Translations under genes and position numbers: made by a program
Origin: Oculina patagonica
Lineage: Eukaryota
DNA length: 64,000 bases
Assembly: GCF_052425735.1 (NCBI RefSeq)
Contig: NC_135759.1
Span: 45,446,001 to 45,510,000 of the forward strand
Direction of reading: 5' to 3'
Notes under the pieces: model-generated
The model's database searches: none
Told to the model about the DNA's origin: nothing
Seen by the model: only the letters and a program-made list of their open reading frames with translations
In this document: piece by piece, positions 59,197 through 64,000 of the stretch
Layout of the letters: every line of letters starts with the position of its first letter
How positions within the stretch are numbered: the first letter of the stretch is position 1

Positions 59197-62100
59197 ATGA
59201 AGGTATACAGTAGCTTTTTGTTATTCGTTGTAACTATTGCACTCCTTGATAGGAAAAGTAAGGCAGACATTTCAGCCCTGAAAGCCCGCAAAGGTGAGGC
59301 AGAATATAAACAAACGGATGCATCAGCCAAACGTGACGATATCGCTCAAGAACAAGGTAAAATATGTAACCACAATAACAGAATCTGAAGGAAAAAACGC
59401 GCTGCCCTTCTCCTTGATACAACATGCTACGCTTGGAAATAAAAATAGTAACTTACATCAGAGGGAGATAACATAAGGTCCTTGGGTTACACTGAAGATT
59501 AAATTGTAGACATGACACTTGATTTGTTGAAGTTCCACCTGGAATGTACGCTATCGTAAAGCTAGATAACATCCCAGGATAACATTCAGTTGTGCAGTGA
59601 TCTGATTGTTTATTTAACAGCAAATTTGTTAACGTTTTTGCATCCTTGAACTCTATTACATCTTGAATTAATTTTTTTGTTGTTATTAGGTTATGCCCAT
59701 AAAACATTTCGTTTCTCGCCCGACCAATCTCTTTTGGAAACGTAACAAAGATGCTTTCTGTTTCCTTTCTCGGCTGTCTCTGAGTTAACATCTAAATCAG
59801 TCCTTCAATGGACGTCTTTGAACACTTTTAGGGGATGTAGCGATTCGTACCTAAATGTATATTATGGGGAAGATGTAATCAAAGTTCGCTAGCGCTTGCG
59901 GTCATTGATTTATTTACTTATTTATTCTCGGCTTTTTTAACCGATCGATCGACCGACTTTCATGAGAGGGAGAGGTCGATGGGAAACGAAACATTTCGTA
60001 GATATTAATTCTGACGGAAACCAGGTGCGGTCAGGTGCGGCAAGCAGGAGAACCAAGTGTGGGTTCAACCACTGATGTCTTAATGAAGCCTCGAGATTTA
60101 TTAGAATGAAATAAATATGTATTATAAAGACGATATTTACCTGCATTGCTAAGCAAATGTCGCTTTATCGGATGGGCGGCGGTTTTGTTATTCCTTTGTT
60201 ATGCTAAAATGGAGTATAGTGTGTCTTCCATACAAATGTTTGTCAAAATTAACACGAAACTCTAACTTATAATAGTCCTGGGATGATCAGTTGCATAACT
60301 GAATCGCCCTGATAGAAACAATCAAACCCGACAGAGCAAACCAGTTGCTGATTGGCCAAAAATCGCCAGAAAATTTCTTAGACTGAGAGGCGTTTGTGTA
60401 CGACATTTGAATAAAATAGTAAAGAGTCAATTCAAAATTTGCGGCCTTTATCTTTGTTTCAGGAGAAGATTATTTGAGACATCTTTCAATACTTACTTTG
60501 CAGTTAATTTTTTTTGCCCGTAACAATTAATTTATGCGCCTTTTGGCCTTCAGAGAAGATAAGATAAGATGGAGACTGGACAACTTTTTGTTATCGACAA
60601 CAAAATAGTATCGACAACTAAAACACGTATAGCCGGTGTAAAACGAGCTGTCAACAACTTTTAAAACGCTTTTTTGTTTCCAAAAAGAACCTCCTCTTTT
60701 GTCTTTTTTGGCCGCTATCTCGAATGAATGTAGTCTGTACTTCCCCGAACAGTGTTTGGCAATAACGTCTAACTGCGATGCTGTCTTCTTGTATACAAAT
60801 AATAATTACAATAAAGTTTTAAAAAACGAAAAAATAGTTAAAAACGTAAAAATGTCAAAATGCGACGAAATTAAATGACGTATTGATACTAAAAAGTAAA
60901 AAACCAATTTCAAGCAGTAACTTTGTCATTCCGGCTGAAAAAAAACAACTGAATTTCTTACCATAAAAATTTGAAAGTAATTTGTTGATTTGTTGTCCCA
61001 CAAGCCTTGCAGGGGAAGATCTACCAAAATGTCACGGGACCTACATATGCAATTAAATGCTTACTTGTTTTTTTTTTTTTTTTTCAGATAATGGCCTCCC
61101 TAATGACCCTTACATGAACTACATGTTGTGGCCACACCTTCACTTTAGTGGGACTTTTCGTGCCGATGTTTCAACTGTCAATAATAAACCATCCAATTAC
61201 GACAATGACAACTTTGTCCAAGGTGACCAATTACAAAGCTCCGGAAACTGGAACCCAAAAGGCAGTGGTGAATGGAGCGTAAGTGGCTCTGTGACTCACG
61301 TATGTTATGCTGATGGACACTGTGTGGGGGATGATGAAGGAAATAAGAACACCGAACCAATCATGGGAGCACATGTACTTGGTACGTACAAAAACTCTTA
61401 ATTTATATCTAATGCCCAGCTTAATGCTGAAACATTTGTCACTAGCTACCTCCATTTCGGTAAATATTGTCATTTTTATACTTCGAAGGAATTATTCTTA
61501 TAATTTACAATAAAGCAGTCGTTTTTAAGTAAAGACCGTACCGAATGTAAAAGATAAAAGGATTGCTTCACTTGCTGACTATTTCATGACTGATGTGTTC
61601 CTGCCCGTTTCACGGGAGGAAAAAAGGCCAATCCACATTATTTTTTTCACAGAATAAAGGGCTCTACAGCTTACAAGACCCGCTTGTCGGGTTGTAGGCG
61701 AAAGCTCGTTATGTGGATAACGAACTAACAAGTGAGCCTGTGGACAGTCGTTTGATGACGCTTTTTAACGATAGCTTGTAGACTTTTTTTTATCTCGCCG
61801 ATCAATTTTGTGTTAAGATTCATTCAAATTGAATATTTTTACTTTATAAAACCAGGGTATGCTATGTGAGGTTTTCCGGTTTTTACGCCTTATGGCCAAC
61901 TGGGTAGCAGGTTCACAAGCCAAAACTCAAATTGTAAGCAAACAGTGTTAACAATTGCTACAAATTCAACCGCGAACTCGTGTATATTAAGTCTCCGGTT
62001 AAGACTGTTTTCAATTTATATCACCTTGACAATTTGCATTCCTCGTTACAGATGGCGGCAACAAAGCGTCTGCAAAGATGGTAGACCTAGACAGTGAAGC

Positions 62101-63457
62101 TCAACTCTTTTCTGAAATTTGGGGCTGGAGAATTCGCATTGAGAATTTATTTTCCGCCGATTACGCACCAGTCCCGCTTCAGTACCTGTGGAAGAAAATG
62201 ATTACCACACGGGGAGGAGCTTTTACTCTTGGTTCGGCTTATCAATCGGTGCTATCAAACATTACATGGTTAAACCATGGAATGGACTCGCCTTTCTTCA
62301 AACAGCTTCAAGGTGCAATGAAAAATGACAAAATTGACAGCGAAAGGCTATCAATACGTTTTAATGTAGATATGTACCAGAAAGAATCAAACGAAAGCAC
62401 TTTTACCATGGGACGTCTCACAGGTAGAGCATTATTGTTTTTTCTGTTTTTGTCATCGTCACTGCTTTTGCCATTTTCTACATTAACTGCCACTACAGCC
62501 TGCGTAGCTGGTGGTGTTGGATTTAAAGCGCGCACAAACTTCCTCACCAAGCCCCTTTGTTGTGCGCGCTTTTAAACCCAATACCGCGAGCTACGCAGGC
62601 TACTGCCACTTTCAAAGCAACTGTCACCATCACCATCAACATCACCTTCATTTCCACTGTCGATATGCCTACTCTGGGACCCAAAATCGCCCAAAATCGC
62701 CTTAAGTCGCCCAAAGTCGCTCTAAGTATAGATATTTTCTGTAACAGTGCTTTATGGTGTACCATGTACATGTATACCACAACTGTCGGTCACCTAAAAT
62801 TGCCTAAAAGGTCACCTAAAATTGTCGTTCAAAGTCGCCCAAAATTGCCTTAAATCGCCCAATATCGCCCGTAATTTTGGACAAAATAAGCTAAAATCGC
62901 CTAAAGTCGCCCAAAGTTACGGCGACTTTGGGTCCCAGAGTAGGCCTTTATTTTTGAAATGCCAAAGTAAAATGTGAACAGGCATGTACAATTTACGAAT
63001 ACGTCTTAAAGTTTACATTCAGTTCTACAGGTTTTGTGCGAGCTTTGGGTTTTTTATTTTAAATCACACAGGTACAATTGGTTTGTTAGGCCGAAAATCC
63101 CCGCCGTACTTTACTCACGGCCGTATGATGAAGGCACTGTCGAGTAATCTTCAGGATGCACCATTTTATGTCGATAAAGCGAATGGAAAGGTGTTTGTAG
63201 ACTTTGGTAACACTTTACCAATAGATGAAAAGGGTAGTGTAGACACTGAAATCAGAGGTGATATGTTTGTTGCCGTGCCTGTTAACCAGAATCCGTCGCT
63301 GACTTGCTCTGATGATCTTCTGTGGCTTGGTCGCATTTATAACAAGGTTCCTAACTGGTATCAGAACACTGCTGGAGTACAGGCCTTCCCATCACTTGTA
63401 TCATTATCTCCTGCTGAGATAAAAACAATCAGCCAGCATCCACTGGTTGTTGCTGAG
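59197..63457 (+). CDS. Secreted protein resembling bacterial VioB/RebD/StaD-like proteins, 5' part (exons 59197-59356, 61088-61381, 62052-62423, 63072-63457; continues past the right edge)
   Basis: Phase-compatible GT-AG exons give MKVYSSFLLFVVTIALL... followed by MNYMLWPHLHFSGTFRADVSTVNN...WNPKGSGEW...AKMVDLDSEAQLFSEIWG...YQSVLSNITW...LSIRFNVDMY...GRLTGTIG...FTHGR...VFVDFGNTLP. This parallels the VioB N-terminal motif order as I recall it (MSILDFPRIHFRG...PTAN, YNAAG, RWVDSDP, IYAG, LFQF, LTVQY, MVGVVG, AGRLL, LNLACAIP). A possible microexon lies at 63865-63888, and the window ends on an acceptor-like ttttaag. Confidence 0.8.
62667..62946. mobile_element. MITE in intron 3 of the VioB-like gene
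   Basis: TIRs GCCTACTCTGGGACCCAAA / TTTGGGTCCCAGAGTAGGC with aaRtcgccYa subrepeats. Confidence 0.75.
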
Positions 63458-64000
63458 GTTTGTCAACAATATAAAGGTTTTGATACTAACATTGTGTTAT
63501 GATTGTTACTCTCAGTATTCTTAGGGTAATCTAAGCAAAAGGTGTAATTTTATTGCCGAACATGTTAGTAGCACTTCCCACATACAGTTATTATTTATTG
63601 ACCATTGGGTATAAACAAACCTTTAATTATGCTGACTACTGCATTATCAGGACTCTTTCCAATGGTAACAATTTACTACAGTTAAGTGGGACTCTTAGGA
63701 CCACTTGGGTCAGCACTGTTCTCTTGGTACACTAGTTAAAGGGAGATCTAGTATTTATGACTGCCTTAGAAGCCACGCACTTGGAGTGAAACTCATACGC
63801 GATCACTGAAACCTTCCCGTCTTGTTTCTCCGTTTTTTCCCCTTGTTTCTATCCATACCTTTAGGTCAAGGATATTCAGCTTTCCGCAGTAAGACACTAC
63901 CTCTCTGGAACCTCTATTTTCATTCACCCGCTGTAAACACTACCTCTATTGTTATTCAGGGCTAGAGGCATTGTTGTCACCTGTTATTTATTGTTTTAAG

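Follow-up and report, generated by a model that had tools for sequence, protein, structure and literature searches.

VioB, RebD and StaD are haem-containing synthases that dimerise indole-3-pyruvate imine, and their superfamily is, to our knowledge, known only from bacterial natural-product pathways. We know of no function for the much larger branch of this superfamily that is referred to as 'ferritin-like protein'. In the current analysis we have studied a stretch of 64,000 nucleotides of stony coral DNA (contig NC_135759.1 of assembly GCF_052425735.1, positions 45,446,001 to 45,510,000), referred to below as the window, whose forward strand encodes, from position 59197 to the right end, the front part of a spliced gene related to these proteins. 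The gene is probably a two-domain, secreted animal member of the VioB superfamily that existed before the separation of cnidarians and bilaterians, most likely derived from an ancient bacterial transfer and most likely coding for an oxidative enzyme.

Homologues in bacteria

The second exon of the gene, coding for 97 aa, was searched with phmmer against 1.84 billion representative proteins. This gave 316 matches at E<=1e-3; of these, 43 reach E<=1e-10 and 9 reach E<=1e-30, a similarity far above chance. In most of the full-length matches residue 9 of the exon, corresponding to Met63 of the spliced protein, pairs with residue 1 of the matched protein. In a blastp search, a single block pairs residues 63-404 of the spliced protein with the first 340 or so residues of proteins that are encoded without introns and measure either 550-660 aa or 880-940 aa; identity over this length is 30-37%, and the scores are 150-207 bits. 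Both searches bear out the initial annotation in placing the start of the conserved core at an internal methionine aligned with the bacterial initiator. When bacterial relatives are compared with the whole window by tblastn, exons 2-4 are the only matches. Among the columns covered by the window that are conserved in at least 90% of 48 bacterial rows, 34 of 40 are identical in the window protein. As expected of a superfamily member, the N-terminal region is collinear with the family from its first residue and retains the invariant positions, and the coral protein belongs to a very large, mostly bacterial and uncharacterised family. Single exons gave nothing useful against Pfam, NCBIfam and the PDB sequences. 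A protein-atlas search with exon 2 yielded SphA/MetA-type matches below threshold only, which were taken as noise, and the LodA_N-like proteins returned by the atlas feature search (scores <=0.65) were not trusted.

Bacterial members of the family occur in two forms. The fused form, of 880-940 aa, comprises a beta-sandwich N-terminal region and, in the C-terminal third, the domain PF12902 ('Ferritin-like'), and is exemplified by proteins of Undibacterium sp. TS12, Chromobacterium sp. IIBBL 290-4 and metagenome-assembled genomes of Acidobacteriota, Chloroflexota and Myxococcota. In the split form an N-protein of 550-710 aa is encoded together with a separate partner gene, as in one locus (L002) where a 597-aa gene is directly followed by a 351-aa PF12902 gene. 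The profile search recovers 1397 proteins at E<=1e-5; examples named 'ferritin-like protein' come from Acidobacteriota, Chloroflexota, Myxococcota, Bacteroidota and Betaproteobacteria, and a scan of one genome per GTDB species identifies 312 encoding loci in at least nine phyla. The coral protein resembles this bacterial family in its collinearity from Met63, its retention of the invariant positions and the equal two-part architecture of a coral homologue described below; it differs in its introns, its predicted signal peptide and its C-x5-C pair, all of which the bacterial members lack.

The genomic contexts of the bacterial genes include TonB-dependent receptors, contractile-injection genes and similar. 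In the neighbourhoods of 79 loci from the nearest family one partner alone is frequent, a protein of about 490 aa that has no Pfam match and is encoded just downstream of the split-type N-protein in 32 of the 79 (L007-L086), and no recurrent amino-acid oxidase is found among the clustered neighbours. Several Undibacterium loci of the fused type have DHQ-synthase-like, UbiA-prenyltransferase and TIM-barrel genes nearby. In a protein of 1540 aa (P0013), encoded by a long open reading frame (ORF) on a 505,699-nt ENA contig, the family's N-terminal segment of 35 residues is weakly repeated about 14 times.

Comparison with VioB and RebD

An AlphaFold2 model was built for an 897-aa bacterial member (P0048; pLDDT 92.3, pTM 0.88), which is 31% identical to the window protein, and was compared by Foldseek with the Swiss-Prot models; the structural match is accordingly that of the bacterial protein and not of the coral protein itself. 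The top match is VioB (Q9S3V0; E 2.8e-39, residues 1-893 against 1-936, 18% identity, probability 1.00) and the second is RebD (Q8KHV6; E 8.2e-35, 19% identity, probability 1.00). The next match, at E 2.7e-6, is a generic Ig-like array. The NCBIfam equivalog model of VioB, TIGR04492, has a curated cut-off of 1250 bits; it scores 13.8 bits with an exon of the related coral locus L001, 15.8-18.2 bits with the animal proteins and at most 25 bits with the bacterial relatives, at collinear positions, and has no match to the window's own exons. The family has an N-terminal motif in common with the first 30 positions of this model.

Like VioB, RebD and StaD, the family thus combines a beta-rich N-terminal region with a C-terminal PF12902 domain, starts with a similar motif and can be matched over its full length. 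It is unlike them in the low structural identity and equally low TIGR04492 scores, in that the genes of the bacterial relatives do not lie beside a tryptophan oxidase and, for the coral protein, in being eukaryotic, spliced and apparently secreted. The homology to VioB, RebD and StaD that the initial annotation had recognised by eye therefore holds at the level of the superfamily, while orthology is rejected by the scores of at most 25 bits against a cut-off of 1250 and by the structural identity of 18-19%. On the evidence of the predicted structure, the coral gene is a member of the VioB superfamily that falls into a much larger uncharacterised sister family, itself related in structure to VioB and RebD, remotely but over the full length.

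The C-terminal domain adopts a ferritin/Dps-type four-helix bundle, Dps and bacterioferritins being matched with Z 11-13. The only solved relative is Caulobacter CC_0557 (PDB 3hl1), which corresponds to the family's C-terminal domain (hmmsearch E 1.6e-11; Z 26.6) and is without the N-terminal region, that is, without the part encoded in the window. None of the solved structures compared with a model of the N-terminal region explains the window-encoded part beyond generic beta-sandwiches. A barrel-like match of residues 5-224, with Z of about 7, was set aside as being at noise level.

Exon structure and transcription of the coral gene

The four exons are joined at canonical splice sites on the forward strand to give 1212 nt, or 404 codons free of stops. 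The coding part of exon 1 (59197-59356) starts with the ATG at 59197, encodes a signal-peptide-like segment at residues ~1-17 followed by a variable linker, and ends in a phase 1 donor (caag/gtaaaa). Intron 1 (59357-61087; GT..AG, phase 1) lies 8-9 residues ahead of the conserved core. Exon 2 (61088-61381; acceptor ag at 61086-61087, ag/ATAATG; donor cttg/gtacgt, phase 1) encodes the linker D-N-G-L-P-N-D-P-Y and then the core from Met63 (61114; MNYMLWPHLHF), in which the family motifs HF-G-F-AD-ST-NN and WNP-G and an animal-specific C-x5-C pair are present. Beyond intron 2 (61382-62051; GT..AG, phase 1), exon 3 (62052-62423; donor acag/gtagag, phase 1) covers core residues ~90-214 with the motifs VDLD, SEIWG, YQS and LSIRFNVD. 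Intron 3 (62424-63071; GT..AG, phase 1) is followed by exon 4 (63072-63457; donor gag/gtttgt, phase 0), covering core residues ~214-342 with the GTIG, P, R and DxGN positions. The first part of intron 4 (phase 0) occupies 63458-64000, and the remaining gene, comprising the end of the N-terminal region and the ferritin-like domain, lies beyond the right end of the window.

Contigs of the RNA runs X1 and X2 were placed on 59100-64000, where they cover the four exons and skip the introns. The joint of exons 2 and 3 (61380 to 62051; GT..AG, cut +1) and that of exons 3 and 4 (62418 to 63067; GT..AG, cut +5) are each seen in both runs. A 468-nt contig of X1 aligns to 59100-59360 and then to 61093-61289, and fits an exon 1 to exon 2 junction at 59356/61088 if a four-base overrun of the aligner is allowed. 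An RNA contig also shows that the 5' untranslated region reaches upstream of 59100. At the other end, one contig runs 180 nt past 63459 with the first codons V-T-G-H-L-P-V-I-K-C, matching the start of exon 5 in the related locus L001 (V-S-G-T-F-P-V-L-K-C), and the gene therefore extends beyond the window. With GT-AG sites and RNA contigs at all three junctions, including a spliced transcript that joins exon 1 to exon 2, the initial prediction of four phase-compatible exons is confirmed; they make up the front of a genuine nuclear gene of a stony coral, which is both spliced and expressed.

Of the 261 bases in the exon-1 and 5'-untranslated part of the 468-nt contig, 20 differ from the window, and the exon-2 part is identical to it; the contig may represent a paralogue, a divergent allele or an assembly chimera. 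The exon-1 contig of the second run shows 4 differences from the window.

The splicing has a direct bearing on whether the sequence could be bacterial contamination or an artefact of the coral assembly. Such an explanation, which is almost certainly wrong, has essentially a single point in its favour, the bacterial nature of the closest full-length relatives. It is already refuted by the four spliceosomal introns, three of them with RNA-confirmed junctions; intron 3 contains a high-copy repeat of the host, the G+C of the gene equals that of the rest of the window, and homologous loci in the related coral locus L001, in jellyfish and in amphioxus bear introns as well.

The related coral locus and the ferritin-like domain

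The best match of exon 2, at 87% identity, clusters with a hypothetical protein of Oculina patagonica (KAL9985887.1), the contig of which is locus L001. Six blocks of this locus cover residues 1-892 of the 897-aa bacterial protein P0048 in order, and two of its ORFs carry PF12902. Its exons 2-4 share 73-87% protein identity with the exons of the window. The dN/dS ratio between the two is 0.26 over 339 codons, which indicates that the gene is under purifying selection. Exon 1 of L001 encodes a similar signal-like start (MKVYTPFLLF...) with the same phase 1 donor. A second copy of the signal-peptide exon (L001 20051-20197; MKVYTPFLVF..., same phase 1 donor) lies past the last exon of the L001 gene, some 2.5 kb further downstream, and suggests the presence of tandem paralogues in that coral.

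The ferritin-like domain in the coral homologue has the motifs Q-L-E-H and Q-E-M-M-H in place of E-L-E-H and E-E-M-L-H in bacteria, and PF12902 is also present in jellyfish and tunicate proteins. The C-terminal ferritin-like domain anticipated in the initial annotation is therefore found in the coral homologue, whereas the corresponding portion of the window gene lies past the right end.

Animal homologues and features of secretion

Homologues have been identified in the scyphozoan jellyfish Sanderia malayensis (EukProt model) and Rhopilema esculentum (LOC135683325), the tunicate Styela clava (XP_039261872.1) and the amphioxus Branchiostoma lanceolatum (CAH1265198.1). The Styela clava protein has a thrombospondin type-1 (TSP1) repeat ahead of the core. 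The Branchiostoma lanceolatum model Hypp3131 (453 aa; L088 8001-17857) contains two near-identical N-terminal family fragments, each with the shared phase 1 intron, and probably merges two tandem gene copies. Cluster representatives in AFDB include A0A1S3JJ99 ('LOC106173762', E 3.8e-56), C3XQ70 and A0A1X7V0E2, which from their accession ranges we tentatively assign to a brachiopod, Branchiostoma floridae and a sponge, respectively. About 35 further 50%-identity clusters matched by exon 2 in the phmmer search consist of short ORFs whose match has an internal start; they frequently lie on contigs of at least 0.3 Mb and look like single exons of eukaryotic genes. A word-indexed homologue search with the jellyfish protein gave one relative only, and a search with an animal-only alignment gave a poor profile and no annotated full-length coral protein; the full animal range is therefore under-sampled.

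In the databases the animal entries carry automatic names only ('uncharacterized protein', 'Iminophenyl-pyruvate dimer synthase domain-containing protein'), and no paper in the library searched was found to link VioB or PF12902 with corals or other animals. As such entries already exist, the novelty lies in recognising and characterising an animal clade and not in a new fold.

The maximum of Kyte-Doolittle hydrophobicity over 11 residues at the N-terminus is 3.16 in the window protein, 2.5-3.2 in the animal members and at most 0.75 in the bacterial relatives. A hydrophobic N-terminus thus sets every animal member apart from the bacterial ones, in agreement with the earlier suggestion of an added signal-peptide exon, and the animal proteins are apparently secreted by means of a predicted signal peptide that is absent from the bacterial relatives. 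The C-x5-C pair occurs at one site in 4 of 4 animal rows and in none of 48 bacterial rows. A KR dipeptide in the linker of exon 1 (K45-R46), previously noted as a site in a short pro-like segment, is indeed encoded; it is absent from the Oculina, L001 and P0008 homologues, and its reading as a conserved site of pro-peptide cleavage is rejected. The animal homologues, themselves uncharacterised, thus resemble the coral protein in forming one tree group and in the predicted signal peptide, the Cys pair and the positions and phases of introns, and differ in identity, which is 87% for exon 2 of Oculina and falls to about 30% in jellyfish, and in the TSP1 repeat added in the tunicate.

Age and origin of the gene

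A careful tree of 63 rows was computed with IQ-TREE under the LG+C20 PMSF model and is unrooted. The five animal rows form one side of a branch with support 99/87, with the internal order (tunicate,(corals,jellyfish)), and on addition of amphioxus and another cnidarian-like fragment the animals still form one group (SH-aLRT 81). In a quick LG+G4 tree the sister group of the animals had been made up of four bacterial proteins of the split type, with 95% support. This arrangement is not recovered in the careful mixture-model tree, and since the donor lineage differs between the two, the claim of a particular donor has been dropped.

The introns provide a second line of evidence. Intron 2 (phase 1, between ...V-L and D-G-G) is found at the same column and in the same phase in the Rhopilema gene and in both amphioxus copies. 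Intron 4 (phase 0) coincides with a Rhopilema intron, and in coral as in jellyfish intron 1 (phase 1) precedes the core by 8-9 residues. Intron 3 has no counterpart in Rhopilema; as far as the comparison with the jellyfish goes, it is confined to the coral lineage. Taken together, these observations indicate that an intron-bearing gene with a signal exon predates the cnidarian-bilaterian split. As judged from these sequences, the gene would be an old animal gene, and any transfer from bacteria would predate that split. A recent or coral-specific acquisition is rejected on the strength of the single animal group across phyla and the common intron positions and phases. The initial annotation had proposed a horizontally acquired gene domesticated by gain of introns and a secretion exon; the introns and the secretion exon stand, and a recent or coral-specific gain does not. 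A published list of horizontal transfers in corals has no entry for 'ferritin' or 'violacein', and some of its entries are given merely as 'predicted protein' (PMC4878875).

The same observations could also be accounted for by an ancient eukaryotic gene that descended vertically, with no transfer into animals, and was kept in some marine invertebrates and fungi and lost elsewhere. A single branch separates the animal sequences from the rest, their topology is compatible with the species phylogeny and robust nesting in any single bacterial clade is not seen, their introns are common across phyla, the AFDB cluster matches include entries named like eukaryotic genes, and fungal PF12902 proteins, encoded next to the amino-acid-oxidase genes lodA/lodB, have been reported (PMC4417212). 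We nevertheless regard vertical descent as unlikely. The family is overwhelmingly bacterial, both in the 1397 profile matches and 312 GTDB loci and in a fold search of the Atlas, which gave bacterial clusters only; the animal distribution is so far sparse; and the point at which the animal core begins is precisely that of the bacterial start codon, a eukaryotic signal exon being added in front, the appearance expected of a captured bacterial ORF.

Possible function of the encoded protein

VioB has been described as containing haem b and showing catalase activity (PMC9705886). Because of this analogy and the ferritin-like motifs, we infer that the animal protein is a secreted oxidative metallo- or haem-enzyme. 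In the scheme we propose, a gene already bearing introns and coding for a secreted protein would have been present before the cnidarian-bilaterian split, with ancient transfer from bacteria as its most likely source, and would later have been lost from many animal lineages. Its product would most likely be a secreted metal- or haem-dependent oxidative enzyme with the active centre in or beside the ferritin-like domain, and the beta-sandwich region encoded in the window may serve as the part for substrate binding or scaffolding.

Several points weigh against this proposal. We know of no member of the subfamily with a shown catalytic function. The jellyfish proteins are without the second metal-site-like motif and the tunicate protein is without the His of the first, and this partial loss makes the case for a conserved enzymatic centre weaker. 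The ferritin-like domain of the window gene itself is outside the window and is not seen, and the signal peptide is judged from hydrophobicity only. In a separate model of an N-protein (P0063; pLDDT 94.3) the N-terminal region resembles only generic Ig-like, intimin-type and macroglobulin-domain sandwiches, with Z <=9.1. As for the origin, the trees are unrooted and contain no VioB or RebD rows, and the donor differs between them; of the phylogenetic pattern expected in the initial annotation, the single animal group is recovered, and nesting within bacteria is not demonstrated. The fungal PF12902 proteins (PMC4417212) also make an older eukaryotic history possible.

A rival explanation is that the protein is not an enzyme, with the beta-sandwich array serving in adhesion, matrix or binding outside the cell and the ferritin-like bundle persisting as a structural or metal-storage remnant. 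The generic sandwiches matched by the N-terminal region, which include S-layer-type ones, would suit such a role, as would the fusion of the tunicate member to a thrombospondin type-1 repeat, the gain of an extracellular-type Cys pair, and the absence of the second ExxH-like motif in jellyfish and of the first motif's His in the tunicate. This account appears improbable, however, in view of the 34 of 40 family-invariant positions that the coral protein keeps in common with presumably enzymatic bacterial proteins, the retention of both His-containing motifs (E-H and ExxH) in the coral homologue, the dN/dS of 0.26 and the enzymatic nature of the characterised superfamily members.

A more specific function had been put forward in the initial annotation, namely that of a functional animal counterpart of VioB, RebD and StaD, obtained by lineage-specific transfer, which couples indole-3-pyruvate imines, made for instance by secreted L-amino-acid oxidases, into extracellular bisindole pigments or defence compounds. 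Within Swiss-Prot, full-length structural matches to the family are confined to VioB and RebD, the N-terminal motif is common with the first 30 positions of the VioB model, the animal proteins are apparently secreted, and the position of fungal PF12902 genes beside lodA/lodB gives an indirect hint of a link with amino-acid oxidases (PMC4417212). Against these, the VioB equivalog model gives 14-25 bits against 1250 and nothing on the window exons, the structural identity is 18-19%, the shared introns and single animal group across phyla contradict a recent transfer, and the metal-site-like motifs vary among the animal members. No link to indole-3-pyruvate imine chemistry was found, no amino-acid oxidase recurring beside the bacterial relatives in the 79 loci, with the coral neighbourhood not screened; clustering is in any case not required of animal genes. 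A counterpart of this kind is very unlikely. We are equally doubtful of the related possibility of a secreted VioB-superfamily enzyme that couples amino-acid-derived imines or similar compounds outside the cell and has been kept in animals since before the cnidarian-bilaterian split, and bisindole coupling by the coral protein is speculation. A secreted oxidative enzyme of broader definition, in a gene of most likely bacterial and ancient origin, is preferred.

Other features of the locus

A small upstream ORF of 34 codons (59097-59200) is situated in the 5' leader, its TGA overlapping the main start (ATGA, 59197-59200). It is probably transcribed, given that the RNA contig extends upstream of 59100.

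Intron 3 contains an element (62667-62945) similar to miniature inverted-repeat transposable elements (MITEs), with 25-nt terminal inverted repeats (62667-62691 and 62921-62945) that are 96% complementary. Its depth is very high in all runs and reaches about 73,000 in X6. One X6 contig skips 62666-62952, and the insertion is therefore polymorphic or absent in a related genome. The same intron has a near-perfect hairpin (62497-62601), with arms of 31 nt that are 87% complementary and a nested pair of 19 nt; in an X6 contig the centre of the hairpin is replaced (joint 62519 to 62579). A further repeat of very high copy number is located at the right edge of the window (63856-64000), where the depth in X6 is about 105,000 and loose ends occur at 63887. 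A scan of 58500-64000 with Rfam revealed no RNA family.

Significance

The gene described here represents a conserved, apparently secreted and intron-bearing branch of the superfamily in several animal phyla, which is expressed in a reef coral and is under purifying selection. It provides a clean example of a very old gene of bacterial type that has been kept patchily in marine invertebrates. If imine coupling by the animal proteins were true, corals, jellyfish, tunicates and amphioxus would make some pigments, bisindole-like or defence compounds themselves and not by way of microbes. The animal branch thus offers a defined target for asking whether animals themselves carry out such oxidative chemistry.

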